Assembly (NCBI GenBank): GCA_025594325.1
Contig: JANHCV010000005.1
Location: 1,860,001 to 1,924,000 of the forward strand
Direction: 5' to 3'
DNA: 64,000 nt
Source of the DNA: Blastocladiella emersonii ATCC 22665
Taxonomy: Eukaryota > Fungi > Blastocladiomycota
The notes under the pieces were generated by a model, which saw nothing but the letters and a program-made list of their open reading frames with translations, ran no database searches and was not told the origin of the DNA. Position 1 is the stretch's first letter. Each line of letters begins with the position of its first letter. Shown in pieces: positions 21,572 to 58,229 of this stretch. The position numbers and the translations under genes were made by a program.

Positions 21572-24500
21572 TGTCTCGCACATTGCACGTGTTGGGCGCG
21601 ACGCGTCGTCCGTTGTTCGGCGCCGCGCCGCGTTCGCTCCGTTGCAAACGCGATCCGTCTCGACCCGTATCCCACTTTGCCCAGATTTTTCTCAATGCGG
21701 CAACGGCTCAGAGCAACCTCGTCGACCACCCCGAGCGAGACTCCTGCCGCTCCTCGAGGGATCGTCAAAGAGCGGATCGCGAGTGCGGTGGCCAAGTTTG
21801 GCTGCGTGCCTCGCTCGGCCGGCTTCGCGCTGGATCGCACCGCGGCCGCGCCGCAGGGTTGTTCGTTCTCCTCGACTTCAGTTCTCGGCCTTCAGCGAAC
21901 TTGAGCAGCATGGATCGAGCAAAATACATGATGCACTTGCGCCATGGCTACTGCTTCGATGGAGTTCGAGTCGCGCGAGTAAGGTTGTTCGAGAACCTGT
22001 CCCAACTCGTTGTCGAAGTTGCGGGTGAAGGAGAGCGTCAATCATCGTAGCTCAAGGCCATCGAACGCGGACACACCGCACGGCGCTTGCTGTCATGCCA
22101 GCCACATTGGTGGCTCGGGACTCTGACAGCGACTGAACAGTGTCGAACGGGTCAACCCATTCACACAGACCGGCCACCGTCACCGGTGCCAGGACCATGG
22201 CCGCCCGTGGCCGGCATGGCCGTGATCGCCCTCCTCGACGCGTCTTCCACCGCGTCTTGATCTCCCACTTGGCCACCGCGCTCGCGAGGTCAGGCAGGAC
22301 AATCACGCGTCGTGTCTCGCGCGCGCTGGCAGAAACCTGAGCGCGGGAGGCAGTGTCCGAGCTCGCGCCCGAGCGAGTATCATGGTTTCCCGAGCGCGCG
22401 CCGCCTCCCGCTCGGGCGAGCCTCCTTCTGTGCAACTCGCTCTCCTCCCCTCCGCTTGCCGACCTCGATAACAGAGATAGACCCGTCCAGTAGCCGGATC
22501 AACGCCTTCCACACCCGCTGCACCACCCGCCGTCATCGACAGGAACTCGCGAACTAGTCGCAGCACTCCAGCAACCATGGGCCGCACGAGCACCCTCGTC
22601 CGGTCCGCGATCCGGTCGGGGCTCAAGTCCCTGGCCCGCAACGTGAACGCCGGCCTCGCCGCCCTCGCCGGTCCGCACGGCCAGATGGTCTACACGCAGC
22701 AGTACGTTCTCATTCATGCGCGACGGTCTGATCCGGCGCGAGCGGTCCAGCGAGCGGTGGTGGTTGTGGCGCAGCGCGATCACGCCGCACCGCTCTTCTC
22801 CCGCTGCCAACCCCGATCCGCTCCCTTACCCCATGAATCTCTGCTGAACTCGATGCATCGTCTACCAGGACCGCTACTACTGCCTTCAAGCGCGACTTCG
22901 TCGCCAAGTCGGCCGAACCGATTCCCGCCACCGCCACCTCCGAGGTGACCGTCTCCGCGTCGCCCCCGCCCGCCATCGTCTCGGCCGTGAAGCCCGCCAA
23001 GTCGGTCGTCGCCGTCGACTCGGGCATCCTCGCCGCCTCTTCGGCTGCCTCGATTGAGCAGCTCGCCCACAACAAGACTGTGGGAACCGCCACCTCGACT
23101 GCCACAAAGAATGCGCCCGCATGCGCCGCGCCCGCCATTGCCATCACCAAGGACCTCGTCTCGGCTCTCGAACTGCGCGACTCGGACCACATCATCAAGA
23201 CCGAGAACCAGAACCATGTCAAGGCCGTGAAGTACGTACGAGCAGCAATCGGCCGCCACCCGGCGTATGCCTGACCACTGTCCGCCGTGTGTAGCATCCC
23301 CGAGAACTCGGAGCGCGCCTCCGGCAAGACTGACGACTCGCAGGACGAGTCGGTCGTCAAGTCGTCGCCCGCCATCATCATCGACGCGACCCGCCTCCCC
23401 AACGCCAACGAGATCACCTTCGCCAACTTCAGGACCGACGCCTTCACCACCAGCAGCGAGGCTACGGCACTCCTGCGCGTGGCAGCCGAGGTCAACGCGT
23501 CCGCATCGGTGGCTACCGTGGCTATCAAGGAGGAGTACGTCACGCACACCGGTCCGACTTTGGCGAGGCTATACCGACCCCCATTCCCGTGTAGGTTCAA
23601 GTCGTCCGGCATCATCGGCACCGACGCAACCGACAAGCTGGCCGTTCCGCACCAGCGGCAGTCTGAGTTTGCGCAGACCGAGGGCCGCGTCGAGTCGGCA
23701 CCCGTTCTCGCCCCCTCTACCGGTATCTCCGTCGATGCCGAGTACACCAAGCTTCTCTCCATGAGCCTTCGCGCTGCGGCGCTGTTCCACAAGCTGGCTG
23801 CGAGCGACGACTCCATCATCGAGGTCGGGTCGCCCGCCGTGGTCATCATGGACAAGTACGTGCTTCTCTCGCCTGGACAGCCGTCGTGGAGCTCGCTAAC
23901 ACGGTTCGCCGCTGACAGGGTCATGTCCGACGCGACCAACTCCACGAACGAGTGCAAGGCCTCGGTCCTCACCCCGCAGCAGGATCAGCAGGTCAAGGAG
24001 CAGGTCCTCGTCCGCGACGACGCGTCGACGCCCGGTCCCGTCGCCGTCGCCGGCGCCAGCAACCTCATCGAGGAGATCAACCACCCGTAAGTGACTATGT
24101 TCAGTGCCGTGGATCCGCGAACCTCGCTGACTCCATCGCTTGTCCAGTGTTGAGCCGGCCTCGGCCTCCGCCGAGGGCGAGACCGAGCCCGTCGTTCTCA
24201 CGTCCCAGCAGCATACCGGATCCGAGCAGCTCAAGCCGACGCTCGACTCTGGCTCCGTCGAGTCTGCGCCCGCCATCGCCGTCGCGATCGGCGTCGTCGA
24301 CACCCACGACACCTCGCTGGCCAAGCAGGGCCAGTCCGCTGTTCCCGTCAGCGAGACGACCAGGACCAACGCCAAGATTGAGGGACCCGGCGTGACTGCC
24401 GAGGCCAAGTACGTTGCCCTTTTGCTCAACCGATATGACGGATCAGTGGCTAACACCCGGCTAACCCTCTAGAGTGGACTCAATGGAGATCGCCAACGCA

Positions 24501-26500
24501 GGCCGAGGAGTCGCAGGTTGCGGTCGGTACTATGGCGCCGCCCTCGCTCCAGGAGCGCCAGCCCGCGCCCGAGACCAGCACGCCGTCGTGCGCCGATGGC
24601 GACGCGAACCTGCAGCAGGCCCCGATCACTGCTCACGACGCGGCGTCGCAGCGGAAGTCGGTCTCGTCGGCGGCAGCGGCCAGCGTCACTGCTGCTGCAA
24701 GCCCGAGTGAGGCGCCTCCCGCGTCCGGTTCGGCCGCTGCACCGGGGTACGCTCATCACTACGCGTCGGGGTGCCCACGACTGAATACTAACTCACTACC
24801 TTTCGCATATTTGTAGAACCGAGGCCGCACCGGCGGCGCCCAGTCAGGTCAAGCGCAGCGGCGGCGGGTACCCGCCGATGAAGCTGATCCCGATCCAGCC
24901 GTACGTCGAGCCGGTCGTGCTCAAGCCGAGTCCGGGCTTCATGCCCCGGAAGCCCGGCCGGAAGGTGTCCGACATATACAACCCGCGCGTGCACGGGTAC
25001 GTCGCACCTTGGCTTTGCTCCCCTCGCGCAATCCTGAGCGCTGACGTCCTTGCCCGGCGCCGTGTAGGATCGGCATGTTCCGCAAGCCCTACGTGCCGTC
25101 GACGATCGAGTCCAAGCGCTACTACCCCAAGTTCGACTACACGCAGGGGCCGCAGTGGATCGCCTCGCTCGGCGATCGGTACTACGCGTGGCGCTACCCG
25201 AACCGCATGCCGCCGGCCGATCCCGACGTGTCTTCATCCGCGGCCTCGATGAGGACTAGTGGTGGCAGTGCGCCCGAGGCGTCGCCAGTCGCTGATCATG
25301 CACCGCTCGTCGAGGCTGCCCCCGCACCAGGGCCAGCGCCGGCTCGGGCCTCGGCCGCATGGACGCCGCGCGTTCCGTCGCTGATCGTTAAGATGCTCGA
25401 GGGCGCCGAGTCGGTTCCCCACGCGTTTTTCGGGCTGGTGATGCACGGCGACGACACGGCCGACTGGACGGACGAGGGCCGGCACGGGCCCACGAGCGCC
25501 GAGGTGGCCCGCGACTTCCAGCACGGCGCGCTCGGCGTCACGCGCGCCTTCATCGACGGCGAGTCGGACCCGTACCTCAAGCTGGTGGAGGACATCGAGA
25601 CGGTTGTGCCGCACTCGCTGTTCGACGCGCTCGGCGTGCACCTCATGACGCGGCCCGCGCCGCTGCTCCCCAAGGCCTCGGTTCTCGCCCTGCTGCACGT
25701 CGTCGACCAGCACCCGGCGGCCATGGCGCACTATACACGCGCCATGGACCCGTCGCTCACGCGTGTCCGGCCGTTCTGCGACATGGCGCCGTTCGACAAG
25801 TACTCGTGGCGGGCGTTTGAGCGTCTCGACCGCGCCGTGCTGCGCGCCTGTGCCGCGGGCCAGGGCGTGTTCGACTCGCACGAGCAGGCCACCGACGCGA
25901 TGGCGTGCCTGTGGTATGTCGGCCGGCTCGTTAACAAGGCGCTCCCGAACTGGCCGGCGGACCACGGCGACGCGCAGCGGGTGGCCATGGTGGTCGCGCA
26001 GCACCTCATGTGGGTCGACCCGAACGGCATGATCGCGGCGTGGTCCGACCCGGCGTCGTACGAGCGCGCGGCCATGTGCCTGGCCAACTACCTGGTAGCC
26101 ATGGTCCCGCGGCGCCCCTTGGGCCGGCCCAAGGACGGGGCCAAATAGGAGTGAAACGCTATCCCAGGAGAGATGTGTTGTATCATAGAGATAGAAACGG
26201 TGTGTATAGGTCCTTGTCCTGTCCTCGTGCAAGTGAGATTTCCGGGCTGTAGAAGGAGCGGGGACGAAGTTCGAGGCGCGTCGCTCATCTCCGGTTAGCG
26301 CGCGAGCAGACTCACGCGCTCGTCGCCGGCGCTCCCTCTCTCTCTCTGATTCGAGCACCACACCCCAAAAGCACCATGGACTTGATGCAATCTCATGAAA
26401 ACAGCCCGGGCAGCGTTCAGCTCGCTCGGCTCCCCGCGGAATTGCAGACCGCCGTCCTCCAGCTGGCCGACCCGCGCTCCTCGATCGCGGCCGCTTCTGC
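21572..26500. repeat. Left arm of 4929-bp near-perfect inverted repeat
   Basis: Reverse complement of 53301-58229; paired coordinates sum to 79801; only two differences seen (22663, 24968), though not every base was compared. Confidence 0.97.
22577..26148 (+). CDS. Multi-exon protein: long Ala/Ser/Thr/Pro-rich region plus C-terminal RhoGAP-like helical domain (copy 1)
   Basis: Several GTACG/GTAAG...CTAAC/CTGAC...AG introns join ORF pieces 22577, 22945, 23287, 24140, 24532, 24878, 25075; one junction (~24410-24470) unresolved. Confidence 0.65.
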
Positions 26501-28654
26501 CTCTCTTTGTGCGCTTTCCCGAGAGAGCTACACGCGGCACTCGTGGATTCTTGCTATCGTGGACCGGCTCCTTGCGCTCCCCGTTAGGCCAAACCGCTAT
26601 GGACGGCGCGTGCCCAACGACGCCCTGTCGCGTCTTGTCCTTTGTGACCTCAATCCAGCCCTGACTCAGAATCCTAAGATTGTGCTTCAGTGGAACTACA
26701 AGCGCGTTCCGCCGCCGATGGAAGTCTTTGTCGCTCTAGCCTCGCACATGTGTCGCCGGGTTCAGCTCTGCGACCTAGAGCCCTTGAATTTTCACCAACG
26801 TCTGGAGCTATCACTCACCGAGCAGAATAGCTCTGTTTGGGTGAGTCCTGTTGCCGCGCTCGTCCGGCTTCTCGCAGCTGGAGTGGCGTTTGAATGGACG
26901 GATTTCCTGAGCCAAGCTCTCGGCCTTGTCGCATCGCGCTGCCCCCAGCTCCTTGACGTGCGCCTGGAACTCTCGGAGTGGGTGCTGCTTCTTCAAGTTC
27001 CTGACTACGCTTTTGAAATTTACGAAGTCGAGGCGATCACTACATTTTCGCTCCGGTTTGTGGATGCTCTCGTTTTCCTCTCAGTCGCAATTTGGAATTC
27101 CGCAAGCTTTCGTGCGTTACTCGGCGAACCTCGGCACGCCGTGGACGCGGCGGCTCTTGCTGCTGTACTTTGTGCGGACGGCCCGTCAGGATTCGTTCTT
27201 GAAGAAACGGGGAAGCACGAGTTTGTTCGTCATGCGGCGGACATCCTCCCCTGGATTCTCGAGTACAGCCCGCAAATGTCAGCCGAAGTGCGCAACGCGT
27301 ACGTTCAGACGGCGGTCTCCCTGGGGGGCGACGTTTTCACGCCGTTGCTCGCCCAGTTTCCTGACCAGGTCGTGGCTTCTCTCCCCTTCCGAGACGATAT
27401 CGGAGACGCGCTCCTCGATGTCATGGGGCTTCCCGACCCGCAGCCCGAAGACGGACAGACTGCCCGCCAGCTTGGCGATAGGATCGTGACTTGGTTTGAC
27501 GAAGGTCTGTCAGTTGAAAATCTCGAAACCCTTGACTCTCACGGATTAATCGCTTCCAAATGGTGGAGCTACTTGGTCGGCACAGCGATCGCCCGCGAGA
27601 AGTTTGATTACATTTCTCGTCTTCGCAAGCGATACACCCTTGACGAGTGGAGGACGCTGATCCTCAATGGTATGGCCTGGAACCTGCTCGCAGACCACCG
27701 CGAGCGAGTTGCTCACGCCGCCGTGTGCGTTGTGTAGCATACTGCGTCGCGCGCCGCGAATATCGAACAGATGGCGATATCATTGCTCGCGCCATCCTCA
27801 CGCACGCACTATTTACTGGTCCTCAAGATAACGGAAGCGACCTTGACCGTCTCACCTTGGGCGATTTCGCCAACGCCTTCCGTCTCCACTCTGGCCAATC
27901 GACCAACACTTGGCAGTCCGACTTTCTCGTCTGTGGCGACGTGTTCATCATTGATGAAAACCTTCTCGCTCGTCCCGAGATTATGGCTGAACTGGTCTGT
28001 CTTCTCGCAAGTGCTGTTTCGACGCCTGAAGGCAGGAGCGAGCTTACGCGCCAAGTCAAGCGTTTGGGTTTGGGCTATGTTCATCTCCTTTTATTCAGAG
28101 TGATCCGGCACGTACTCAACCTTGAAGGTGTTCCGGAGGTGCCCCCTCGCTTTGATTACTTTTCCGACGCAGGGCACTCGATTTGCCGCGAGTGCCCGCT
28201 CGCGGCGCAACAGGTTTGGCGTGAACTTGTCCTTGCACTCTGGGATAAGTGCCAGGCACCCTGGTACCCCGAGTATCTCACCCCGCCGTACCTCGATAGC
28301 TTTTCGCGTCTGTGCAAGTACTTTAAAGTCGATGGGAGCGAGCCTGTCAACAAACAATGTGCTTGCAACGGACTCGCGTCTGCTCGGCTCGTCACGCGGA
28401 TCTTTTTCGCGAGTGGCTTCGACGAAACATTTTGTGGCCTGCAGGACGAGGTAAATCTCGGTACCGTGTCTCCGGTTGTTCTCCGGATCGTCCCGGACGC
28501 TGCACTGGACGAAGCCAAAAACTCCAGTGCGGTCGAAGAACTCATTGTCAAGCTCTTCAGGAACGCCGGGATGGAGGTGCTTCCGCGCTGGGGTCTCGAG
28601 GAGCTAGCCCGAATCGCCCCTGATGTGTTTGAGTACTGTGGGTTTGCCCTGTGA
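26376..28654 (+). CDS. F-box-like helical protein with C-terminal Cys motif, family C copy 1 (2 exons, apparently intact)
   Basis: LARLPAELQTAVLQL; phase-1 intron GTATGG...TGTGTAG after LILN joins to AYCVARRE; ICRECP...CAC. Confidence 0.8.
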
Positions 28655-29387
28655 ACGAGTCGCCACCGCGACTAACACCCCGTTTGCAGGCAAGAAACCG
28701 CTTTAAACTCTTGTTTGAATTCATTCTCGGAAGAAGAAACTGGCTTTGGGTTATATGTTTTTCTCTGAAGCCGGCGCTAGTAACTCGCCCAGTTGTCAAC
28801 CCCGACCAACGGTCGCTTTGCTGATTTAAGCAAGAACAAGGCACAGCGGTCCGAATTATCCCAGACGTGAGACCTGCTCAATAACTTCAGGACCTGCGGG
28901 TCCGTTTAGGAAACATTGCGACGGAAGTGGTTGCGGCTTGGTCGCTGTGGCGCACCGCGTCCTCAGCCACTCACGTGCGATGAAACACGCGTTCGACAAT
29001 GCTTTCGGCCCAACGAATTGCCTGTGAGCTGCAGGCGTGTTGCTGAAAACGTACCGTTGATTTCTATGTGCAAGCTAGCTTGCTTGGAATTTGATGTTGT
29101 GGCCGTTGCCAGCCCTGGCAAGTTACACCACCTGCTTGACCCAATTTCAAAGAACTCCTGTCAGTTTGAGTCGCTACGAAAATGGAGAAAGGCTCTTTAA
29201 AGAAGCAAAACTAAGAAGATCAAACAACAACCAACTAATTCACAAACAAAAAAATCTCTCACATCGCGTTCATCATCGCCCACGGAACACTGGCCTCGAC
29301 GGCGACGGCCACTCCCTGGCCTTCTCCTCGTGCTTCACCCAGATGAGTGCGGATCAGCTTGGATTTGCTGCCGCTAGCTGGCCGGAG

Positions 29388-29734: not shown

Positions 29735-29848
29735 CTGGTTAGTTCACTCAACCGGGAGTGTGAGAGGCTACGTTAGGAAGCGAGGGCTGTTGAAGCCGTT
29801 GTGCGAGCAGAAGAGCTCGACCCGTAAGACCCCGCTCTTTCCTCTGAC

Positions 29849-29868
29849 CATATGATTGATCGACGCGT
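29849..29868 (-). promoter_or_regulatory. ACGCGT-N8-CATATG composite motif
   Basis: Minus strand GAGACGCGTCGATCAATCATATG, ~115 bp upstream of the orphan exon. Confidence 0.5.
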
Positions 29869-30149: not shown

Positions 30150-31366
30150 CTAGAACCCCTTCACGTACGCCTTCACAAAGGAAGGCTCAAGCACAGTGCA
30201 CGGAGCAAGACGGCTCAGACCCTCGACGGTGCCGACAGGCAATTTGTTGACTGACCCATGCCCATCACGGGCGACAAGAGCCGCGAGCTGGACCAGCTCG
30301 TCCGCGCTGACGACCCCGTCAAGAAAGCCGGAGAGAAGTCGTTTCCAGGCCGCTGGAGCCGCGCGCCCGCCAGAATGCGCCATGAGGGCATCAAAGAACG
30401 AACGCGGGACGGCCGTCGTGATCGCGCGCGCAACATGACGCAAGGTGATCACGCAGTCGCAGGCGCAAGAGTCATTCTCCGCATGCCGATATTTGGAAAA
30501 CTCCGCGAGATGAGCCCATACCAGTTGGGCAAGCTTGGTCGCAACCTGGTCGTCAACCGACATTAGAAAAGCGTCGAAGAGGATGGTAAGCGTATCGCGC
30601 CAGGGCTGCTGCCACGCGAGCGGGCAGTCCGTGCAAGGGTTGATACCAGGAAGTGCACCAGTGGCCTGATTGTGGTTCTTGTGCAAGTGGTCCTCATCCG
30701 AAGCAAGGGACGAAATCATGGCGTCGCAAAACTGGAGTTCGCAACCTGCATCACGGATCACGGTGAGTGCCGTGTCGCGGGTCTGCGAATCCAAGACGCT
30801 TTGAGGAGTTTGCGAGTGCGGTGCGAGAAGCTGCTGGAGCAGGTGCACGTGGCCAGTCACAGACGCCGCAAAGAGCGTGTGAAGGAACGTTGGGAGAGCA
30901 TGATGCCGCGGATGAGCCTTTGGCTTGGCCGAGTAGCGCTGGATTTGGCGCTTCAAGGACTCCGCGTCGAGCCTGCAGAGCTGGATTCGGTGCGAAAGGC
31001 AAGACGAAAGAGAGGCCAAGGCGAGAACCGGTTCTCCCACGCAAGGCTTGCGGAAGCATCGAAAGCTTGATCGAAGTCGAGACGGCCCATCAAGAACTGG
31101 ACTCTTAACCCTTTTTTCTCGGTGATCCAAAAGTACCGATTGTGGACGGCTGGAGTCCGTAGCTGCGTGAAGAGTGGCTCGGCAACGCGGTCTATCCAAT
31201 GATGAGCAACTCGCGCGTCTCGAATAGCGGGTGCGAAACACGCGGAGGCCGCGGCGAGGGCGGAGCGCAGACCAGCGAGCGGCAGGACCCGGTCGAGGGC
31301 GTCAGACGGCAAGTGTGCAAGTGTGAGGTGCAGGTAGCCAGCTTTGTATTGCATGAGGTGCTCCAT
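30150..31366 (-). pseudogene. F-box-like helical protein, family D copy 1 (frameshift and internal deletion)
   Basis: LAHLPSDALDRVLPL; frameshift near 31030; lacks ~1.1 kb present in D2; keeps PCTDCPLAWQQPWR...CACD. Confidence 0.7.
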
Positions 31367-31493
31367 GGTGAAGTGCGACGGTACAGGGAGTGGCGGAAGT
31401 CTCGACGTGGGCAGAAAGCCGTTGCGCGCGACGACGCGCGGGAAGCTCGCTGGAGACGCGGTCACATGACGGGCGAACGCGTCTCGCATCACT

Positions 31494-31513
31494 CACGTGA
31501 TATCGAAACGCGT
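31494..31513 (-). promoter_or_regulatory. ACGCGT-N8-CACGTG composite motif upstream of D1
   Basis: Minus strand ACGCGTTTCGATATCACGTG...GCGAGACG, ~130 bp before ATG 31366. Confidence 0.55.
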
Positions 31514-31605
31514 CTTTGTTTCTCAAGAGCGGTGCAAAGGCTCACCGAAAAAAGTCAAGTCGAAAAAAAAATTTAACGAGGTACAAAGGATCGTACACAA
31601 ACGAC

Positions 31606-33924: not shown

Positions 33925-34164
33925 TGTTTTGTGTGGGCACGGGGAGAGAGGAGGAAGCCCGGGGGCAGCGCCGCGAAGACGTTGGGGGCAGGCTGGGCGC
34001 CGAAGCGCCAACGCGGGCCAACGCGGACCAGACAAAAGCGCAAGGGCCGCGCGTCCCGTCCACCTTCGACTCACATGATATAACGTCGCGAGGATTTTGT
34101 CTCCTCAAGTCCAAGGCAAGGCACAGGCAAGCGCCTGGGGTTCTCGTGAGTGCACAGTTGAAAG

Positions 34165-34184
34165 ACGCGTCGTTCGCCCACATG
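34165..34184 (+). promoter_or_regulatory. ACGCGT-N8-CACATG composite motif upstream of C2
   Basis: AGACGCGTCGTTCGCCCACATG, ~95 bp before ATG 34277. Confidence 0.5.
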
Positions 34185-36601: not shown

Positions 36602-36944
36602 GCACCTCTACGTCAATCTTGCTTGCACACCCTCGTTTGCGTCCCCGGACAAGGTTCCACAATGCCACAGCACATGACGATCAAAAATACAACGTTCATA
36701 ATGAGCTGCCTATTGATCACACCAGGTTTCCATCGGGCTAAATCTGAGCCCCGTGTTTGTGAGCAACGGGAACCACGTTGAGATCATGACAACGATAAGA
36801 GTGTGTGAGGCGCCTCGGGAGTGAACGACGCGTCGCTGAAACGCGTTGTGCTGGCAAGCCACGCGGCCAGGCTGAGACTCACACGGGTGCTGCCGTGTCT
36901 CACCCTCGCTCTCCCCTAATCAAACACCACACACGGAAAAGCCC

Positions 36945-39214: not shown

Positions 39215-39299
39215 TGGGGTGATTGTGTACCTCAACTTTCTAACAGCTCGGTGCGGTTGATGTGACCCCGTTAGTTGTCTTTCTGGTTTAAATCGAGGG

Positions 39300-45780: not shown

Positions 45781-48700
45781 ATGTCGGCCAACGCATCCAC
45801 CGCGTTGCTCGCCCACCCAGAGTCGACTGCCGTGGAGATCGCTCCGCTGCAGGCGGCGCAGGCCGCCGAGGCCGCCGCGCCCAAGGCCGCCCCCGCCGCC
45901 GCCGAGAAGAAGGAGGCGTCGGGCGACGACCACCACGTCGATGTCGGCGACGACATCACGCCCGAGATCGAGGCCCTGCTCAAGACCGACACCACGCACG
46001 GCCTGACCGCCGCCGAGGTGCAGCAGCGCATCGCCCAGTTCGGCCACAACGAGATCCCCGAGGTCAAGCAGTCCAAGCTCATGAAGTTCATCTCCTACTT
46101 CCTCGGCCCCATCTCGTACCTCATCGAGGTCGCCTGCATCATCTCCGGTGTGCTCAAGCACTGGGTACGTTCTTCCTCGTCGTCGTGGGCGCGCCCGATC
46201 GCCCGCGCTCCAGTGTTGTGCCCCCCGTCACGTGCTGCTGCTGCTTGGCCACCCTCGTCTCGCCCGTCCGCCGATCTCCTCCCGCACGTCCACTAACCAA
46301 ACTATGCGCGTAACAGGCTGATTTCGCCATCCTGCTCGCCCTGCTCATCGTCAACGCCGTCATCGGCTACATGGAGGAGGCCAAGGCCGAGAACGCGCTC
46401 GAGGCCCTCAAGAACAACCTCGCCTCCAACGCCCGCGTCTTCCGCGACTCGAACCTGACCGAGATCCCGACCCGCGAGCTCGTCCCCGGCGACATCATCA
46501 TCCTCCGCCTCGGCGACATCATCCCCGCCGACTGCCGCCTGCTCGGCCTCGGCGCCAACCACCAGGAGGTCGACGAGGACCTCATGATCGACCAGGCCGC
46601 CCTCACCGGCGAGTCGCTCCCCGTCAACCGCGGGAAGGGCCACATTGTCTACTCGTCGTCGGTCGTCAAGCAGGGCCAGATGCTCGCCGTCGTCGTCAAG
46701 ACCGGTATCAACACCTTCATCGGCCGCGCCGCCAACCTCATCTCCATGACCAACGAGGAGGGCCACTTCCAGAAGATCATCGGCGCCATCGGCAACTACC
46801 TCATCTACATGACCATCGTCTTCGTCATCATCCTCTACCTTGTCCTCGTCCTCGCCCGCGGCTACGACTTCCTCGAGGCCCTCGACAAGGTCGTCGTGCT
46901 CACCATCGCCGCCATCCCCGTCGGTCTCCCGACGGTCCTCTCGGTCACCATGGCCGTCGGCGCCAAGCAACTCGCCGAGAAGGAGGTGATCGTCAAGCGC
47001 CTCCCCGCCATCGAGGAGTTTGCCTCGGTCTCGATCCTCTGCTCCGACAAGACCGGTACCCTCACCCTCAACGAGCTGTCGTTCGACGACCCGTTCCTCA
47101 TGCCCGGCTTCACGGAGCGCGACATCCTGCTCAACGCCTACTTTGCGTCCGAGGCCGGTGCCAAGGACGCCATCGAGCTCGCGGTCCGCGGCGCCGGTAT
47201 GGAGCGCGTCGACATCCTGCAGAACCTGCCCGCCGGCCAGGAGCACGTCATCCCCGGGTACAAGATCCTCAAGTTCCTGCCCTTCAACCCCAACGACAAG
47301 TACACCAAGGCCAAGGTCCAGAACCTCGAGACGGGCGAGATCTTCGAGTGCATCAAGGGCGCGCCCCAGGTCGTCATCCGCCTCTCGGGTGGCGATGCCG
47401 CCGCCGAGCGCCAGGTCATCGACTTTGCCCAGCGCGGTCTCCGCGCCCTCGGTGTCGCGCGCACCCGCGCCGACGGCTCGTTCCAGCTCGTCGGTCTCAT
47501 CTCGCTGCTCGACCCGCCCCGCCCCGACTCGGCCCAGACCATTGCCGAGTGCGCCGAGCTCGGCGTCGAAGTCAAGATGATCACCGGTGACCAGGTCATT
47601 ATCGGCAAGGAGGTGGCCCGCCGCCTCGGCATGCAGCGCTGCATCCTCAACGCGTCGCGTCTCGTCGACCCCAAGGCCGACGAGGAGGAGCTCACGCGCC
47701 GCTGCGAGAAGTCGGACGGGTTCGGCCAGGTCATCCCCGAGCACAAGTACCGCGTCGTCGAGCTCCTGCAGCGCAAGGGCTACCTCGTCGGTATGACCGG
47801 CGACGGTGTCAACGACGCCCCCGCCCTCAAGAAGGCCAACGTCGGTATCGCCGTCGAGGGCTGCACCGACGCCGCCCGCTCGGCTGCTGATATTGTTCTC
47901 CTCGCCCCCGGTCTCGGAACTATCGTCGACGGTATCAAGACGTCGCGCGCTATCTTCCAGCGCATGCGCTCGTACGCCATCTACCGTATCAGTACGTTGA
48001 CTTTTTTCCTTGTGCTGCGGCATCGGACCTTGACGCTAACGATCGCACCCTCGCCCGACTATAGCCTCGACCATCCACTTCCTCGTCTTCTTCTTCATCA
48101 CCATCGCCCTCTACGACTTCACCCTGCCCAACAAGCTCATCATCCTCATCGCCGTGCTCAACGACGCCGCCACCCTGGTCATCGCCGTCGACAACGCCCG
48201 CATCTCGAAGCGCCCCGACAAGTGGCGTATCGGCCAGCTCATCTTCATGTCGACGGTGCTCGCGATCCTGCTGACGGGCGCGTCGCTCGCGCACTACTAC
48301 GTGGCCAAGGCGCACTTCGGCGACCGCGAGGACGCGGTCGGGTACATCCACACGGTCATCTACCTGCAGGTGTCGTCGTGCCCGCACTTCGTCATCTTCT
48401 CGACGCGTGTCGGCACCTACTTCTGGAAGTCGCCCCCGTCGCTCCTGTTCACGGTCGCCGTCGGCGGCACCCAGGTGTTCGCCATGGTCATGTCGATCAT
48501 CGGCTGGCACGACATGGACGCGGAGCCGATCGGCGTCGCGTGGGGTTTCGGCATCATGGCCATCTCGCTCGTGTACATGGCGTTCCTTGACATCGTCAAG
48601 GTGTTCATCTTCAAGTTCTGGTCGTTCGAGTTCACGGCGCGCGCGTGGCCGTCCAAGGAGCGCAAGGACAAGCTCGCGGCGCGCAAGGCCAAGGCCATTG

Positions 48701-48831
48701 TCGACAAGCGCGTCAAGCTCAACTGGCAGAAGGTCCGCAGCCTCATGCCCATGTTCAAGGTCATTGCCGCCTTCAAGTCGGGCGGCAAGGCGTCGTCGGG
48801 CGCCCTCGACCTCGGCTCCAAGATGGAGTAA
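45781..48831 (+). CDS. PMA1: Plasma-membrane P-type (P3A) H+-ATPase
   Basis: TGES, IPVGLP, CSDKTGTLT, KGAP, TGDGVNDAPALKKA; introns 46165-46316 and ~47992-48064. Confidence 0.97.
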
Positions 48832-49299: not shown

Positions 49300-51050
49300 C
49301 TTGACGACGACGTGATCCCGAACCTTTGAGCGAACCTTGTTGTTGTCACGCTCGAGTGAGCCGGGGAGCAATGAACGACCTGAGCGTTTCTCGCGCGCGC
49401 TCAGTGCGAAGGACCGCCCAGCGCGCGGTGGTGAAGAAAGGAATGAGCGCGGTGACGAGCGACATCGACACCCACCTGGCCCCCTCAATCGCCATGAGTT
49501 TTGCTCGAGCTCACTGGGTCTCGACAGCACAGGGGCAAGCGAACCGTGGGGCGAGAGGGGCGGCGAAAGAGACGCGTCGATCAATCATGTGACCGCGTGA
49601 GACATTTTCCCATAGGCCGCCCGCGCGGCTTCTGAGCGAGCGCCGCACCGCCGGCACTGCTCGCTCCCCTGACGCATCACTAGAGCTATTTCGTTGCATG
49701 TAACTTATGGAATTGGCGCGCGCAAGGTGCCGTCGACGCAGACTCCGCGTCCACCAGGCAATCCTGACCCGCGCGCGTCGCCTCGTAGCGCGCGACCCGT
49801 CTCGGCTGTGCCGCTGCTCTCAACCTCTGAATGTTTTCTTGCTGTGCTACGCATCTCTTGCTTTGATTCCGCGCGCGGTGACGTCCGTGAGCAGGTATAT
49901 TTACGTCCGCTGTAAAATCTCAAGCGAGCGGGCCACTTCGCTCCCCGGCTCCACGTCACCCTGTAGCATCGAGCCATGGGCCACGTGTAACGATGACGTT
50001 GAGAGTTCGTTCGGAGTCGGCAATATCGCCAGACCGGAATGATGATCAAGTGGTCTCGCGCTCGTGGATCGACATGTGTCACCTCGTTGGGCCACTGCAT
50101 GCACCGTGTCCTTTGTCATCACGCCCGAGTTGCGGCCAGCACTCCTGCCGGATTGGGCCGTTAACTTGCCAATGTTGCTTCACGCGGCACGCGTGAGCAT
50201 CGCGCATTACGACGAGGTCACTCGGATACTCTCACACGGAGGTCGCCCAGATGCAGCGACCGCAAGGTCTGTGATCTTCCTTGGCACCTCACTCCAACGG
50301 CTTGTCATACTGCGCGGCGGGGTTACGGCTTCACTCCCGCGGACTTCGCAAACACGCACGTTCTCGCCGAGCTTTAGCAGCTGAGGTACGCGTCGTCGCG
50401 GCGGCGGACTAGCTCGCTCGCTGCAAGAAACTGACGACCGGTTCGCTACCTCCAGCCGTCCTCCACGCATTAGTCGAGTCCGGTCCGCGATCTCGCGCAC
50501 GCTTCGGCACGTCCTCGATCGCTGCTGCTGTCGAACCTGTTCGCGACGTGCGCGCGTGCATCGACTGCCCTCCTCAACTCGCCCCGCGGATGCTCGTCTC
50601 GCCCGCCCGCTATGCGCGCATGCCCTGATAACCCGGGCCGGCGAGACACGTGCCGTTGGGTGCAGCTGGAAGGAAGGTCACGCGTCGTTGTCCGACAGGC
50701 CAGCGGCGGACGCGCTCGATCGGGATCGCCGTTGGGCGCGTGCGCGAGGTCGCGGATCGTTCGAAATCGTTGCGTTCTGGCGGCCTCGGAGCGCGATATG
50801 CGTAACAACCCGCGCGCTAAGGATCTCTCGGGGTTATGTTGAAATCTCAGATGCTGATTGCCTTTCTCCAGCAATACCTTAGCCGATGGAGCAAATTGTG
50901 ACAGAGTACGGTCAGAATTCAGAAGTGTCTCACGGCCACGTGCCCGAAACGTGATAGTTTGACGCGTCTCGCCGTTCAGAGCGCGACGCGAAGCACCTTG
51001 GTGGTCACTTGTTAGTTCATGGTGAACGTTACAGAGTGCATGACGAAACT
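49300..51050. repeat. Diverged inner inverted arm (right)
   Basis: Partner of ~39300-41050; carries composite motifs at 49572-49591 (+) and ~50948-50967 (-). Confidence 0.85.
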
Positions 51051-51149
51051 TGCATTTATCATGACATCTGGCACGCTCAGGAACAAAAGTCACAAACTAT
51101 GAGCCGCAAACGAGAAGCACCGCAAGGTCGGCCGTGAACGATCGTGTGC

Positions 51150-53425
51150 TTACAGCGAGCATCCAGAAGCGTTGAACGCCTGCGGAGCGACTCGAGCAAA
51201 CTCTTCCGCGCCCCAGCACGGAAGCTCGGACACCTTAATGACCTTGAACAGTGTGAGGACAAGACGCGTGACGCAGTAGTCGTCATTGATCTTGTCCAGC
51301 GCAGCGTCCGGTAAAGTCCGAAGCACGACAGGGGACAGGGTGTTTTTGTCTACTTCCTTTCGAAGGTCGTGAAATGCTGTTTTCGGGTAACCCGAGAAAA
51401 AGACGCGCGTGACGAGACGGGCTGAAGCGAGGCGGTCGCAGGCACATGATTTGCCAGCACGCTCGTTGTCGTCGACTTCAAAGTACTTGCAGAGTCGCGC
51501 GAAGCTGTCATTGAACGGCGGGACGAGATACTCGGGGTACCAGGACTTGCAAGAGTCCAAGAGAGCATGGACAAGGCCGCGCCATGGCTGCTGCGCTGCG
51601 AGCGGACACTCGCGGCAAATCGTGTGTTTTGCGTTCAAAAAGTAATCGAAGCGACGAGGGACGACTGGGACACTGCTATCGGGGTTGAGTAAATTCTGGA
51701 TGAACGCGTACAGCAGAAGGTGTACGACGCCGTTGCGCTCCAAATGAATTTACAACTTGCTCGTGTCATCGGCCGCCGCGAGGGCAGTCGCGAGAAGCCA
51801 CAGGACCTCGTCCATGATTTTCGGACAATCGAGAAATTTCTCGTCGATGATGAACACGTCACCAAAAACGAGAAATTCGAACTGCCAGGTCTCGGACATC
51901 TCGGCAACCTCACGGCGAAAAGCATCAGCGAAATCGCCCAAGCTGAGAAGGTTGGCTTCGCTGCCGCTGACTCCAGGGCTGGGAAGGAGCACATGCTTGA
52001 GAATCTCGGCGGCCATGTCCTCGTTCTCGCACCGGAAATCACGACGTGCGATGCAGTAGGCTATATAGATCAGGCGGCGGGGGTGAGCGAACGTCTTGGA
52101 CTAGCTCGTAAATGTGAGTTCCCATGCGTGCCTTTGAGGATCAGCGTCTTCCATTCGTCGAGGGTATACCGCTCGCGAAGAAGGGCAACATAGTCAAACT
52201 TCTTGCCGGCGATCGCTGTTCCGACCAGGTAGCCCCACCATTTGGGTGCAATCAGTCCGTGAGCGTCAAGGATTTCAAGATTTTCAACCGAGAGTCCGTT
52301 GTCGAAATAGGCCACGATCCGGTCGCCAAGCTGATTGAAAGTGTCTCGGTCTTCGCCCTGCGGGTCGGGGAACCACCGCACGTCCAGAAGCGCGTCCCCG
52401 ATATCGTCTCGAAACGGAAGAGCAGCCACGACCAGGTCGGGGAACCGGACGAGCAGCGGCATGAAGCACCGCTCTCCCAGCGAGACGGCGGTTTGTACGT
52501 AGGCGCTGCGCACCTCGGCCGACATTTGCGAGCTGTAGTCGAGAATCCAAGGGAAAATGTTTGCGGCACCGCGGTCGGCGCCGTACCTCCCTGTTCCGAG
52601 GAGAGCGAGCTCGGATGGGCCATCCGTGCAAAGTACAGCTGCGAGCGCCGCCTCGTCCACCGAGTACTGAGGCTCGCGGAGAAACGCGTGAAAGACGTCA
52701 GATTCCCACCGTACGACGGCAAGATATGCGAGTGCATCGGCAAACCGGAGCGGGAAAGCAGCAAGGATCTCGAGCTGCTCATCACCAAGATACACTTCGT
52801 GGGCTCGAAGGAGCAATACCCACTCTGCCAAGTCCAGGCGGACGTCGAAGAGCTGAGGACGGCGTGAAGCGACAAGGTCGAGAGCTTGGCACAGGAAATC
52901 GGTCCATCCAGAGGCAACACCCGCGACGAGAAGCCGCACGAGCGTAGCAACAGGGCTTTTCCAGACGGGGCTATTTTGCTCGATGAACGACTGTTCCAGA
53001 TGTTGGCGAAGGATCGAGGGCTCAAAGTTGGTGAGATGACCCCGGCGACACATGTGCGAAGAGAGAGCGACGAACACTTCCATCGGCGGCGGAATTTGCT
53101 TGTAGTCCCACCGATCAAAAGTCGTGCGGTCTTGCGTCAAGGCTGGATTGATATCACAACGGACGAGACGCGACAAGGCATCGCCAGGCGGAGGGCTGCC
53201 GTAGCGGGGTGTGTGGATGGGAAGCGCAACGAGCCGGTCCGCGATCGCGAGCATCCACGAGTGCCGCGTGGAGCACTCTCGGGAAAGTGCACAAAGAGGA
53301 GCAGAAGCGGCCGCGATCGAGGAGCGCGGGTCGGCCAGCTGGAGGACGGCGGTCTGCAATTCCGCGGGGAGCCGAGCGAGCTGAACGCTGCCCGGGCTGT
53401 TTTCATGAGATTGCATCAAGTCCAT
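51150..53425 (-). pseudogene. F-box-like helical protein, family C copy 4 (GC donor, in-frame TAA in exon 2)
   Basis: First 125 bp identical to C1; donor AAAG/GCACGC; exon 2 reads ...SKL*IHLERNGVVHLL in one frame; ICRECP...CACD. Confidence 0.75.
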
Positions 53426-56400
53426 GGTGCTTTTGGGGTGTGGTGCTCGAATCAGAGAGAGAGAGGGAGCGCCGGCGACGAGCGCGTGAGTCTGCTCGCG
53501 CGCTAACCGGAGATGAGCGACGCGCCTCGAACTTCGTCCCCGCTCCTTCTACAGCCCGGAAATCTCACTTGCACGAGGACAGGACAAGGACCTATACACA
53601 CCGTTTCTATCTCTATGATACAACACATCTCTCCTGGGATAGCGTTTCACTCCTATTTGGCCCCGTCCTTGGGCCGGCCCAAGGGGCGCCGCGGGACCAT
53701 GGCTACCAGGTAGTTGGCCAGGCACATGGCCGCGCGCTCGTACGACGCCGGGTCGGACCACGCCGCGATCATGCCGTTCGGGTCGACCCACATGAGGTGC
53801 TGCGCGACCACCATGGCCACCCGCTGCGCGTCGCCGTGGTCCGCCGGCCAGTTCGGGAGCGCCTTGTTAACGAGCCGGCCGACATACCACAGGCACGCCA
53901 TCGCGTCGGTGGCCTGCTCGTGCGAGTCGAACACGCCCTGGCCCGCGGCACAGGCGCGCAGCACGGCGCGGTCGAGACGCTCAAACGCCCGCCACGAGTA
54001 CTTGTCGAACGGCGCCATGTCGCAGAACGGCCGGACACGCGTGAGCGACGGGTCCATGGCGCGTGTATAGTGCGCCATGGCCGCCGGGTGCTGGTCGACG
54101 ACGTGCAGCAGGGCGAGAACCGAGGCCTTGGGGAGCAGCGGCGCGGGCCGCGTCATGAGGTGCACGCCGAGCGCGTCGAACAGCGAGTGCGGCACAACCG
54201 TCTCGATGTCCTCCACCAGCTTGAGGTACGGGTCCGACTCGCCGTCGATGAAGGCGCGCGTGACGCCGAGCGCGCCGTGCTGGAAGTCGCGGGCCACCTC
54301 GGCGCTCGTGGGCCCGTGCCGGCCCTCGTCCGTCCAGTCGGCCGTGTCGTCGCCGTGCATCACCAGCCCGAAAAACGCGTGGGGAACCGACTCGGCGCCC
54401 TCGAGCATCTTAACGATCAGCGACGGAACGCGCGGCGTCCATGCGGCCGAGGCCCGAGCCGGCGCTGGCCCTGGTGCGGGGGCAGCCTCGACGAGCGGTG
54501 CATGATCAGCGACTGGCGACGCCTCGGGCGCACTGCCACCACTAGTCCTCATCGAGGCCGCGGATGAAGACACGTCGGGATCGGCCGGCGGCATGCGGTT
54601 CGGGTAGCGCCACGCGTAGTACCGATCGCCGAGCGAGGCGATCCACTGCGGCCCCTGCGTGTAGTCGAACTTGGGGTAGTAGCGCTTGGACTCGATCGTC
54701 GACGGCACGTAGGGCTTGCGGAACATGCCGATCCTACACGGCGCCGGGCAAGGACGTCAGCGCTCAGGATTGCGCGAGGGGAGCAAAGCCAAGGTGCGAC
54801 GTACCCGTGCACGCGCGGGTTGTATATGTCGGGCACCTTCCGGCCGGGCTTCCGGGGCATGAAGCCCGGACTCGGCTTGAGCACGACCGGCTCGACGTAC
54901 GGCTGGATCGGGATCAGCTTCATCGGCGGGTACCCGCCGCCGCTGCGCTTGACCTGACTGGGCGCCGCCGGTGCGGCCTCGGTTCTACAAATATGCGAAA
55001 GGTAGTGAGTTAGTATTCAGTCGTGGGCACCCCGACGCGTAGTGATGAGCGTACCCCGGTGCAGCGGCCGAACCGGACGCGGGAGGCGCCTCACTCGGGC
55101 TTGCAGCAGCAGTGACGCTGGCCGCTGCCGCCGACGAGACCGACTTCCGCTGCGACGCCGCGTCGTGAGCAGTGATCGGGGCCTGCTGCAGGTTCGCGTC
55201 GCCATCGGCGCACGACGGCGTGCTGGTCTCGGGCGCGGGCTGGCGCTCCTGGAGCGAGGGCGGCGCCATAGTACCGACCGCAACCTGCGACTCCTCGGCC
55301 TGCGTTGGCGATCTCCATTGAGTCCACTCTAGAGGGTTAGCCGGGTGTTAGCCACTGATCCGTCATATCGGTTGAGCAAAAGGGCAACGTACTTGGCCTC
55401 GGCAGTCACGCCGGGTCCCTCAATCTTGGCGTTGGTCCTGGTCGTCTCGCTGACGGGAACAGCGGACTGGCCCTGCTTGGCCAGCGAGGTGTCGTGGGTG
55501 TCGACGACGCCGATCGCGACGGCGATGGCGGGCGCAGACTCGACGGAGCCAGAGTCGAGCGTCGGCTTGAGCTGCTCGGATCCGGTATGCTGCTGGGACG
55601 TGAGAACGACGGGCTCGGTCTCGCCCTCGGCGGAGGCCGAGGCCGGCTCAACACTGGACAAGCGATGGAGTCAGCGAGGTTCGCGGATCCACGGCACTGA
55701 ACATAGTCACTTACGGGTGGTTGATCTCCTCGATGAGGTTGCTGGCGCCGGCGACGGCGACGGGACCGGGCGTCGACGCGTCGTCGCGGACGAGGACCTG
55801 CTCCTTGACCTGCTGATCCTGCTGCGGGGTGAGGACCGAGGCCTTGCACTCGTTCGTGGAGTTGGTCGCGTCGGACATGACCCTGTCAGCGGCGAACCGT
55901 GTTAGCGAGCTCCACGACGGCTGTCCAGGCGAGAGAAGCACGTACTTGTCCATGATGACCACGGCGGGCGACCCGACCTCGATGATGGAGTCGTCGCTCG
56001 CAGCCAGCTTGTGGAACAGCGCCGCAGCGCGAAGGCTCATGGAGAGAAGCTTGGTGTACTCGGCATCGACGGAGATACCGGTAGAGGGGGCGAGAACGGG
56101 TGCCGACTCGACGCGGCCCTCGGTCTGCGCAAACTCAGACTGCCGCTGGTGCGGAACGGCCAGCTTGTCGGTTGCGTCGGTGCCGATGATGCCGGACGAC
56201 TTGAACCTACACGGGAATGGGGGTCGGTATAGCCTCGCCAAAGTCGGACCGGTGTGCGTGACGTACTCCTCCTTGATAGCCACGGTAGCCACCGATGCGG
56301 ACGCGTTGACCTCGGCTGCCACGCGCAGGAGTGCCGTAGCCTCGCTGCTGGTGGTGAAGGCGTCGGTCCTGAAGTTGGCGAAGGTGATCTCGTTGGCGTT

Positions 56401-58229
56401 GGGGAGGCGGGTCGCGTCGATGATGATGGCGGGCGACGACTTGACGACCGACTCGTCCTGCGAGTCGTCAGTCTTGCCGGAGGCGCGCTCCGAGTTCTCG
56501 GGGATGCTACACACGGCGGACAGTGGTCAGGCATACGCCGGGTGGCGGCCGATTGCTGCTCGTACGTACTTCACGGCCTTGACATGGTTCTGGTTCTCGG
56601 TCTTGATGATGTGGTCCGAGTCGCGCAGTTCGAGAGCCGAGACGAGGTCCTTGGTGATGGCAATGGCGGGCGCGGCGCATGCGGGCGCATTCTTTGTGGC
56701 AGTCGAGGTGGCGGTTCCCACAGTCTTGTTGTGGGCGAGCTGCTCAATCGAGGCAGCCGAAGAGGCGGCGAGGATGCCCGAGTCGACGGCGACGACCGAC
56801 TTGGCGGGCTTCACGGCCGAGACGATGGCGGGCGGGGGCGACGCGGAGACGGTCACCTCGGAGGTGGCGGTGGCGGGAATCGGTTCGGCCGACTTGGCGA
56901 CGAAGTCGCGCTTGAAGGCAGTAGTAGCGGTCCTGGTAGACGATGCATCGAGTTCAGCAGAGATTCATGGGGTAAGGGAGCGGATCGGGGTTGGCAGCGG
57001 GAGAAGAGCGGTGCGGCGTGATCGCGCTGCGCCACAACCACCACCGCTCGCTGGACCGCTCGCGCCGGATCAGACCGTCGCGCATGAATGAGAACGTACT
57101 GCTGCGTGTAGACCATCTGGCCGTGCGGACCGGCGAGAGCGGCGAGGCCGGCGTTCACGTTGCGGGCCAGGGACTTGAGCCCCGACCGGATCGCGGACCG
57201 GACGAGGGTGCTCGTGCGGCCCATGGTTGCTGGAGTGCTGCGACTAGTTCGCGAGTTCCTGTCGATGACGGCGGGTGGTGCAGCGGGTGTGGAAGGCGTT
57301 GATCCGGCTACTGGACGGGTCTATCTCTGTTATCGAGGTCGGCAAGCGGAGGGGAGGAGAGCGAGTTGCACAGAAGGAGGCTCGCCCGAGCGGGAGGCGG
57401 CGCGCGCTCGGGAAACCATGATACTCGCTCGGGCGCGAGCTCGGACACTGCCTCCCGCGCTCAGGTTTCTGCCAGCGCGCGCGAGACACGACGCGTGATT
57501 GTCCTGCCTGACCTCGCGAGCGCGGTGGCCAAGTGGGAGATCAAGACGCGGTGGAAGACGCGTCGAGGAGGGCGATCACGGCCATGCCGGCCACGGGCGG
57601 CCATGGTCCTGGCACCGGTGACGGTGGCCGGTCTGTGTGAATGGGTTGACCCGTTCGACACTGTTCAGTCGCTGTCAGAGTCCCGAGCCACCAATGTGGC
57701 TGGCATGACAGCAAGCGCCGTGCGGTGTGTCCGCGTTCGATGGCCTTGAGCTACGATGATTGACGCTCTCCTTCACCCGCAACTTCGACAACGAGTTGGG
57801 ACAGGTTCTCGAACAACCTTACTCGCGCGACTCGAACTCCATCGAAGCAGTAGCCATGGCGCAAGTGCATCATGTATTTTGCTCGATCCATGCTGCTCAA
57901 GTTCGCTGAAGGCCGAGAACTGAAGTCGAGGAGAACGAACAACCCTGCGGCGCGGCCGCGGTGCGATCCAGCGCGAAGCCGGCCGAGCGAGGCACGCAGC
58001 CAAACTTGGCCACCGCACTCGCGATCCGCTCTTTGACGATCCCTCGAGGAGCGGCAGGAGTCTCGCTCGGGGTGGTCGACGAGGTTGCTCTGAGCCGTTG
58101 CCGCATTGAGAAAAATCTGGGCAAAGTGGGATACGGGTCGAGACGGATCGCGTTTGCAACGGAGCGAACGCGGCGCGGCGCCGAACAACGGACGACGCGT
58201 CGCGCCCAACACGTGCAATGTGCGAGACA
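53301..58229. repeat. Right arm of 4929-bp near-perfect inverted repeat
   Basis: Reverse complement of 21572-26500. Confidence 0.97.
53653..57224 (-). CDS. Multi-exon protein with RhoGAP-like C-terminal domain (copy 2, inside the right arm)
   Basis: Same as 22577-26148 except one synonymous change and one S/P change. Confidence 0.65.

Follow-up and report, generated by a model that had tools for sequence, protein, structure and literature searches.

Near-identical, gene-bearing inverted arms around diverged gene-family members in the Blastocladiella emersonii nuclear genome

In the genome of the zoosporic water fungus Blastocladiella emersonii ATCC 22665 (GCA_025594325.1, contig 5, one assembled haplotype) two long and almost identical DNA arms face each other in opposite orientation, which raises the question whether they constitute a switch flipping the segment between them, as an earlier note on this DNA had proposed, or a passive outcome of copying between repeats. 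Within the window, i.e., the whole stretch of 64,000 nucleotides that was analysed, a repeat search followed by a base-by-base check of the diagonal identified exactly two mismatches between the 4,929-bp arm cores, both being transitions, which agrees with the earlier description of the arms as pairing on sum 79801 with two transitions (Table 1). Each arm was found to contain one whole 978-aa orphan gene (gene A), its 1 kb upstream and the first 125 bp of a gene belonging to a second family (the C family). The outer edge of the arms is razor sharp and an eroded zone is absent: past the outer edges no collinear homology was found, with 8 of 13 bases matching immediately outside the junction, and no direct repeat was identified when these edges were checked, which means that a target-site duplication is lacking, as had been stated before. 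Within the window the arm terminus occurs at the two arm ends only. Inward, homology goes on in diverged form to 28510/51294 (blastn alignment of 6,965 bp, 91.4% identity overall), whereby the approximately 2 kb beyond the core possess about 70% identity and a dS of 0.78. Ungapped identity in 50-bp bins amounts to 1.00 up to 26500, followed by 0.88, 0.72 and 0.68; at the end of the conserved C-family head, arm-to-arm identity thus falls from 99.96% in the core to about 70% beyond it. A nested, older inverted homology encloses the gene of a P-type ATPase and pairs C4 with C3, its edge coinciding with the exact start of the C unit.

Table 1. Coordinates of the arms and of the genes in and between them (positions refer to the window)
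Feature	Position	Strand	Description
Left arm, near-identical core	21572-26500		4,929 bp; partner 58229-53301, sum 79801
Right arm, near-identical core	53301-58229		4,929 bp; partner of left arm, sum 79801
Arm difference 1	22663		C in left arm, T in right arm; gene A exon 1, synonymous
Arm difference 2	24968		T left (Ser610), C right (Pro610); gene A
Between-core segment	26501-53300		26,800 bp; C1 body, D cluster, C2, C3, PMA paralogue, C4 body
Older nested inverted homology, left arm	36903-40784		66-76% identity; pairs with 53467-49568, sum ~90370
Older nested inverted homology, right arm	49568-53467		66-76% identity; partner 36903-40784
Gene A, left copy, H9P43_005265 (P0124)	22577-26148	+	978 aa; orphan, intron-bearing, annotated (L005 10001-13572)
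Gene A', right copy, H9P43_005270	53653-57224	-	978 aa; differs from left copy by P610S only
C1 (C family)	26376-28654	+	First 125 bp in identical core, body diverged
D cluster	30153-34104	-	
C2	34265-36601		
C3	36903-39214		
P-type H+-ATPase gene	45781-48831	+	Annotated, 941 aa; paralogue of canonical PMA gene
C4 (inverted partner of C1)	51150-53425	-	Head identical to C1, body ~70% identical; in-frame stop 51750-51752

Whether both arms exist was addressed with k-mer contigs built from reads of one sample, the same from which the assembly was made. In the read-derived contigs from three runs the arm appears as a single 4,905-nt piece (21572-26476) at about twice the flank depth (in X2, 292 for the arm as compared to 134-142 for the flanks), and two different contigs join it at 21572, one per outer flank, so that both outer junctions are present in the reads; in the contig of the right outer junction, the 30 letters beyond 21572 are the reverse complement of 58230-58259. 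Misassembly is excluded by this combination of depth and junctions and was rejected, which also answers the earlier concern that only one arm might exist. An assembly artefact, be it a single true arm or an arm that the assembler or the short-read polishing had doubled or made uniform, would draw on the fact that Pilon was run with 65-bp reads, a step capable in principle of removing genuine differences between repeats (PMC9730499), and on the shared sample of all read sets. Against this, the inner flanks (C1 versus C4 bodies) differ in sequence, and the PacBio HiFi reads used for the assembly, with a mean length of 10.5 kb and a depth of about 186x, exceed and span the 4.9-kb arm (PMC9730499); together with the contig evidence this renders the artefact highly improbable and already largely refuted. 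The B. emersonii ATCC 22665 nuclear genome thus does contain this inverted segmental duplication, and in two copies. The two arm differences are not confirmed by the read contigs, which show the right-arm letter only at both sites (T at 22663, C at 24968). The sole contig with C at 22663 enters unlike sequence on both sides and probably comes from another locus. Since the arms are identical and longer than k, an inversion would create no new junction in k-mer contigs.

Gene A is an ordinary, host-like and intron-bearing gene with a promoter and a GC3 of about 0.9. Pfam returned nothing for it even at E<=10, and no orthologue outside B. emersonii was found among 1.84 billion representatives, an exhaustive search which did recover protein A itself, annotated at full length, together with two distantly related paralogues; the proline at position 610 of the right copy is common to the paralogue P0122. 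For the arm ORF at 25075-26148, no homologues were found within the length limits of the search, an atlas search with A yielded weak leads only, and the AF2 model of its C-terminal domain reached a very low pLDDT score. Between the arms reside the C and D genes, which are unannotated in the public record. No identical protein was on record for C1 or for either of two flank ORFs, homologues of C1 were not found within the length limits of the search, and the atlas search with C1 recovered unnamed fungal clusters only. The AF2 model of C1 is of moderate confidence in both pLDDT and pTM, its head being low-confidence, and Foldseek comparison of this model with the PDB gave generic helical-repeat matches only (E>0.04); no PDB sequence match of the C/D proteins with a family profile was found. 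The earlier count of six F-box-like genes holds insofar as six C/D ORF sets are present, while the label itself lacks Pfam support: neither whole C/D ORFs nor their 90-aa heads gave any Pfam hit at E<=10, an F-box profile included. An LPxE-type motif is visible, which is a resemblance only. The ATPase gene had been taken for PMA1; it is instead a younger paralogue, the canonical PMA gene (L001) being located about 1.24 Mb from the locus, and the two share 93.5% nucleotide identity with a dS of 0.16 and a dN/dS of 0.13.

How the arms came to be nearly identical is best approached from their inner edge. The reading favoured here, tentatively and at a strength falling just short of an even chance, assumes an inverted duplication of an ancestral unit of gene A and an adjoining C-family gene, whose A part was kept or reset near-identical by copying from arm to arm. 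The duplicated unit would have comprised approximately 7 kb (21559-28510 versus 58242-51294), its C bodies would later have diverged to about 70% identity, and its A part would have been held at, or recently reset to, near identity by gene conversion, one arm being copied onto the other. The copied tract would extend from the outer breakpoint to 26500, ending 125 bp into the C gene, because there the conserved head of the C family ends and identity becomes too low to extend heteroduplex. The C paralogues are all 84-90% identical at 26377-26475 and 68-77% identical in the following 100 bp; the tract thus ends where family-wide conservation collapses. The C1 and C4 bodies (dS 0.78, dN/dS 0.30), set against two differences per 4,929 bp in the arms, differ from them in apparent age by a factor of about 1,000 to 2,000, according to the measure that is taken. 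Over the 300 bp that follow the core boundary, quartet sites favour C1+C4 (19:6:9), and C1-C4 identity stays about 8 points over that of C1-C3 until ~26975; both the excess near the boundary and the elevated identity are as expected if earlier tracts had reached further inward, and may be signs of such older copying. Copying between the arms is the most natural source of their identity.

Other observations speak against this reading. Over the whole body, quartet sites of C1/C2/C3/C4 (82:74:59) are near a star and K2P distances amount to 0.396 for C1-C4 and 0.405 for C1-C3, so that C1 and C4 do not clearly appear as sisters, which they should be if an A-C unit was duplicated. An A-C pair was sought at the loci of the A paralogues (L004, L006), where no C-like gene was found, and gene A adjoins none of the other C copies. 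The razor-sharp outer edge is at least as compatible with a young breakpoint, and the nested C4-C3 palindrome, ending at the start of the C unit, suggests that C4 had earlier belonged to a duplication of C genes alone. As to whether arm identity is younger than the duplication, the inner edge combines 2 kb of old homology with a short gradient, yet C1 and C4 are not clear sisters.

These points lead to the strongest alternative, a young, one-off inverted duplication without a long history of arm-to-arm conversion, which is regarded as possible, if somewhat doubtful. According to it, gene A originally stood beside one C gene only; after breakage or stalling within the conserved head of C4 or C1, the free end invaded the head of the partner gene, copying proceeded outward through A over 4.9 kb by break-induced replication or template switching, and the new end was then joined to unrelated DNA at the outer edge. 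The anatomy of both junctions would be in line with such an event, as the inner one lies seamlessly within a pre-existing, diverged inverted homology, i.e., the C head with its 84-90% identity among paralogues, and the outer one is abrupt, with the few matching bases and the lack of a target-site duplication described above. Likewise, C1 is no nearer to C4 than to C3 over the whole body, C4 and C3 already form an older inverted pair that comprises C genes alone and has its edge at the C-unit start, A is unlinked to C genes at its paralogue loci, and the arms differ at no more than two bases, which are those unconfirmed by reads. What this alternative does not readily accommodate is the C1-C4 similarity raised for about 500 bp past the core, which requires an extra, earlier exchange. 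In sum, the existence of the arms, their two copies, their content and the step in identity are observations, whereas repeated conversion and an ability to flip are inferred.

Given two genuine arms of almost the same sequence, an ordinary event of homologous recombination could, when resolved as a crossover, invert the 26.8-kb segment. Hence that part of the flip-flop proposal which concerned the arms and the possibility of inversion stands, and inverted repeats around an invertible region are indeed present (arms of 4,929 bp that mismatch at 2 positions and enclose 26.8 kb); the features of a switch, that is MAT genes or telomere- or centromere-like sequence at an arm, were not found. A functional flip-flop, in which frequent or regulated inversion sets which C body (C1 or C4) or whether the ATPase paralogue meets an active or a silent outside context, is considered very improbable, and so slight is also the chance that the arms drive an inversion which swaps the outside context of the C1 and C4 bodies, each being fused to a constant head and promoter. 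If true, an early-diverging fungus would thereby possess a switch acting on the expression or variation of a gene family that evolves fast. The geometry is compatible with the idea, as the arms take in the 5' head of the C gene and its diverged versions, the C1 and C4 bodies, lie at the two ends of the invertible segment, much as in Ascoidea rubescens, in which MATa1 reaches with its 5' end into the repeat (PMC6692504). However, in about 40 ORFs across the window Pfam identified neither an HMG, alpha-box, homeodomain or other regulatory domain nor one of a transposase, integrase or serine/tyrosine recombinase, the absence of a transposase from the window having been claimed before. For the same lack of a serine/tyrosine recombinase match, a site-specific invertase system of the Hin/Gin/FLP type was rejected. 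Furthermore, the window contains no telomere repeat and no tRNA gene, its GC content is at least 0.55 throughout, its end lies about 286 kb short of the contig end, and the C genes are absent from the public annotation. As gene A is present in full in each arm, together with 1 kb upstream of it, either orientation offers the same cis context (gene A and the C promoter) over the 4.9 kb at both ends; local cis context would remain unchanged upon inversion. It had also been pointed out that inversion alters no coding sequence, which holds. The structure is read as passive, and no sign of a dedicated switch was found. Least probable of all, and extremely so, is a composite mobile element with the arms as terminal inverted repeats, since the long inverted termini do enclose lineage-specific, lower-GC3 genes but consist of an ordinary host-like gene and its promoter, occur nowhere else in the window and come with neither a target-site duplication nor a transposase, integrase or recombinase domain, for which reason a composite transposon was rejected.

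The locus is of a known kind, namely a long inverted repeat which carries genes and has been shaped by homologous recombination. In fungi and animals, repeats of this kind are known to undergo inversion, changes in copy number and concerted evolution. What it documents is a copying tract halting at the end of a conserved head, which leaves a constant head and a variable body and requires no special mechanism. The annotation is corrected as well, by a second proton-pump gene and by C/D genes that form an unannotated block under selective constraint between the arms; the text of the genome paper contains neither 'inverted' nor 'palindrom' (PMC9730499).

Among the systems to which the locus may be compared, flip/flop mating-type switching in Ogataea polymorpha, Komagataella phaffii, Ascoidea and Pachysolen relies on inverted repeats of a few kb around a region of tens of kb which is inverted by recombination between them, whereby in Ascoidea the repeat takes in the 5' end of the gene at the region's edge (PMC6692504). 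The B. emersonii locus differs in that its ends are the diverged paralogues C1 and C4 rather than MAT genes, no centromere or telomere was found beside an arm, and orientation-dependent silencing is implausible within 4.9 kb of identical context. Inverted duplications mediated by inverted repeats (DUP-TRP/INV-DUP type) and formed by break-induced replication or template switching were reportedly described by Carvalho and colleagues in 2011. In this type, one junction lies in pre-existing inverted homology, the other being a non-homologous or microhomology join. The junction in the C head and the sharp outer edge resemble this anatomy, whereas a triplicated segment is missing in B. emersonii and the event is inferred from one genome. 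Palindromes of primate sex chromosomes, as reportedly worked out by Rozen and colleagues in 2003 and in later work on the X, are said to have arms at least about 99.9% identical, intact genes and a unique spacer. Mutual copying of these arms makes their identity younger than the duplication, with inversions of the spacer arising as by-products. The B. emersonii locus shares with them two mirror-image, near-identical arms that are truly present, with an intact 978-aa gene in each; its arms (4.9 kb) are small relative to the spacer (26.8 kb), and its context is not a sex chromosome. The long ORF-containing inverted repeats of Candida albicans are kb-scale, >98-99% identical and approximately 10-100 kb apart (Todd et al. 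2019, eLife, PMC6591007). They hold whole ORFs and intergenic DNA, serve as substrates of non-allelic homologous recombination and mediate inversions of 4.1-102.6 kb, of which one of ~32 kb was validated by PCR (PMC6591007). The arms described here are likewise kb-scale, near-identical, inverted and carry a whole ORF; unlike the Candida repeats, they are known from one assembled haplotype of a zoosporic fungus, in one orientation, and have one boundary inside the coding sequence of a diverged gene family.

A repeat search of the window returned inverted arms at 21559-26997 and 52804-58242 with 98% complementarity, and a base-by-base check along the diagonal i + j = 79801 placed the near-identical core at 21572-26500 versus 58229-53301. 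This core measures 4,929 bp, and its two copies, which lie 26,800 bp apart, differ by two transitions only, C/T at 22663 and T/C at 24968. On the same diagonal, pairing was found to go on inward of the core in a diverged form: the arm identity per 50-bp bin is 1.00 through 26500 and thereafter 0.88, 0.72 and 0.68, and the pairing obtained with blastn (21559-28510 versus 58242-51294) comprises 6,965 aligned bases at 91.4% overall. The outer edge is abrupt, with 8 of 13 bases matching just outside the junction, and in a sensitive search the two outer flanks showed no collinear homology. As the flanks form no direct repeat, a target-site duplication is absent, hence the arm coordinates and counts of the earlier note (two transitions, no target-site duplication) were found to be correct. 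Within contig JANHCV010000005.1 (2.21 Mb), of which a retrieved locus matches window 43653-64000 at 100% identity, the record coordinate equals the window coordinate plus 1,860,000, and from the window end to the contig end about 286 kb remain.

The assembly GCA_025594325.1 was generated from PacBio HiFi reads with a mean length of 10.5 kb, which exceeds the arm length, and was subsequently polished with Pilon; the genome paper makes no mention of inverted repeats or palindromes (PMC9730499). Read evidence was taken from four public runs (X1-X4; one sample being the assembly's own), all in the form of k-mer contigs. In three of these the arm is represented by one contig of 4,905 nt (21572-26476), the depth of which is about twice that of the flanks (292 versus 134-142 in X2, 56 versus 30-39 in X1 and 9.1 versus 3.8-7.9 in X3). 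At 21572, two distinct contigs join the arm in three runs, one being the left flank and the other continuing with 30 letters identical to the reverse complement of 58230-58259. A misassembly was therefore rejected, as reads from the assembly's own sample hold both arms and both outer junctions. At both mismatch sites the arm contigs show the right-arm letter only, so the differences at 22663 and 24968 are unconfirmed by the reads and the identity of the arms may be complete. The left-arm letter at 22663 occurs in a single contig, which continues at either end into unlike sequence and probably belongs to another locus. Short contigs of X4 possess loose ends at 23959, 26213, 26824 and 25920, the letters of which we take to be loxP linker and 454 adaptor sequence, suggesting X4 to be a Cre-lox circularised paired-end library.

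Codon-position GC together with visible GT...AG introns revealed one plus-strand gene in the left arm. This gene (gene A) is annotated as a 978-aa hypothetical protein, as identified by an exhaustive representative search, which among 1.84 billion representatives revealed two relatives only, both distant and both from B. emersonii; a Pfam domain was not found in it. The difference at 22663 is synonymous, and the sole protein difference between both copies is P610S at site 24968. Each arm begins with 1.0 kb of DNA upstream of gene A, continues through the whole of gene A and a 228-bp intergenic stretch, and ends 125 bp into the following gene, which is C1 at the left and C4 at the right. A read contig of single-copy depth shares about 54 nt (22617-22670) with exon 1 of gene A and diverges on both sides; the shared piece represents the N-terminal presequence-like part of gene A, and a third locus seems to carry it.

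Annotated and recognisable genes of the arms, the intervening segment and the left flank
Feature	Identifier	Position	Strand	Remark
Gene A, left copy	H9P43_005265	22577-26148	+	public annotation
Gene A, right copy	H9P43_005270	57224-53653	-	public annotation
P-type H+-ATPase gene		45781-48831		paralogue of the canonical PMA gene
Eukaryotic porin (VDAC) gene		9071-10210	-	Pfam E 4e-51; among the very few recognisable window genes

Between the arms reside four C genes (C1, C2 and C3 direct, C4 inverted) and a minus-strand D cluster, which at the protein level constitute one family of long ORFs, none of them annotated in the public record. The C genes possess a GC3 of 0.60-0.66 versus 0.8-0.9 for host-type genes, and they are under purifying selection; for the bodies of C1 and C4, dS is 0.78 with a dN/dS of 0.30. 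Frame breaks are present in C3, which is divided between two overlapping frames at 37257-37593, and in C4, where an in-frame stop (51750-51752) separates the two C-terminal ORFs; either small introns or the onset of pseudogenisation may account for these breaks. The label "F-box-like" received no support from Pfam at E<=10, a PDB profile search or a fold search, and the C body is predicted to be a generic helical repeat. C1 27960-28250 and C3 38530-38830 (approximate positions) share 82-87% identity, other pairs reaching 54-76% over this patch, which suggests patchy gene conversion also among direct copies. Clustered lineage-specific families, almost lacking Pfam domains, make up the whole neighbourhood; its left flank holds two further tandem paralogue pairs in orphan ORFs (13140-13683 / 15765-16284, 80-83% identity; 1457-2578 / 2996-4136, 65% identity).

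Nested inside is an older inverted homology (36903-40784 versus 53467-49568, 66-76% identity, sum about 90370), which is bounded on its outer side by the start of the C unit and encloses an 8.8-kb spacer with the P-type H+-ATPase gene. This gene, previously addressed as "PMA1", is a second copy, as the canonical gene H9P43_004880, located on the same contig about 1.24 Mb off, retains the PMA-adh_short neighbourhood found in B. britannica. Homology between them is limited to the gene body, intron position included, and amounts to 93.5% nucleotide identity; given a dS of 0.16 with a dN/dS of 0.13, both copies are constrained. At the locus of the canonical gene (L001), a distant C-like gene (21171-22650, 30-38% amino acid identity) resides about 8 kb from it.

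From these divergences, the radiation of the C family (dS 0.8-1.0) was the first of three events, followed by the ATPase duplication and ultimately by the last homogenisation or duplication of the arms (divergence 0.0004 or less). Identity among all four C paralogues amounts to 84-90% at 26377-26475 and drops to 68-77% over the following 100 bp, and the core end coincides exactly with the end of this family-wide conserved head. If copying depends on homology, a tract that comes in from the A side should halt here, so that the pattern of constant head and variable body needs no additional mechanism.

As to the origin of the arms, we tentatively favour, with slightly less than even confidence, an old inverted duplication of A and C whose arms have repeatedly converted one another. 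For this argue the diverged continuation of 2 kb inward of the core, the informative sites for C1 with C4 over the 300 bp directly beyond the boundary (19:6:9) and the C1-C4 identity, which is about 8 points higher until about 26975. Somewhat less likely is a young copy made only once, for which template switching or break-induced replication from one inverted paralogue to the other would have started within the C head; its outer edge would have been made by a non-homologous join, with which the sharpness of this edge is consistent. Further in line with a young copy, the whole-body quartet is star-like (82:74:59), the K2P distances C1-C4 and C1-C3 are nearly equal, C4 pairs with C3 in the older C-only palindrome that ends at the C unit start, and A-C linkage is lacking at the A paralogue loci examined (L004, L006). 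Old conversion and young copy are both ordinary products of homologous recombination.

The earlier note had proposed a candidate flip-flop locus, in which recombination of the arms could invert the middle segment. Of this, the recombination substrate stands and copying between the arms is likely, but a genetic switch is not supported, as MAT sets and a recombinase or regulatory domain are missing, the latter two among about 40 window ORFs. Hallmarks of the yeast flip/flop systems are alternative MAT gene sets at the region ends, silencing of one end by an adjacent centromere or telomere and the observation of both orientations (PMC6692504). In contrast, the B. emersonii locus lacks such alternative gene sets, and neither a silencing centromere or telomere beside an arm nor telomere repeats or tRNA genes were found in the window. 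The 4.9 kb adjoining either segment end are identical whichever the orientation, and inversion between identical arms creates no new k-mer junction. A passive inversion of the middle via crossover between the 4.9-kb identical inverted repeats is plausible by analogy, since for comparable repeats of Candida albicans inversions are documented, one of about 32 kb having been validated by PCR (PMC6591007).
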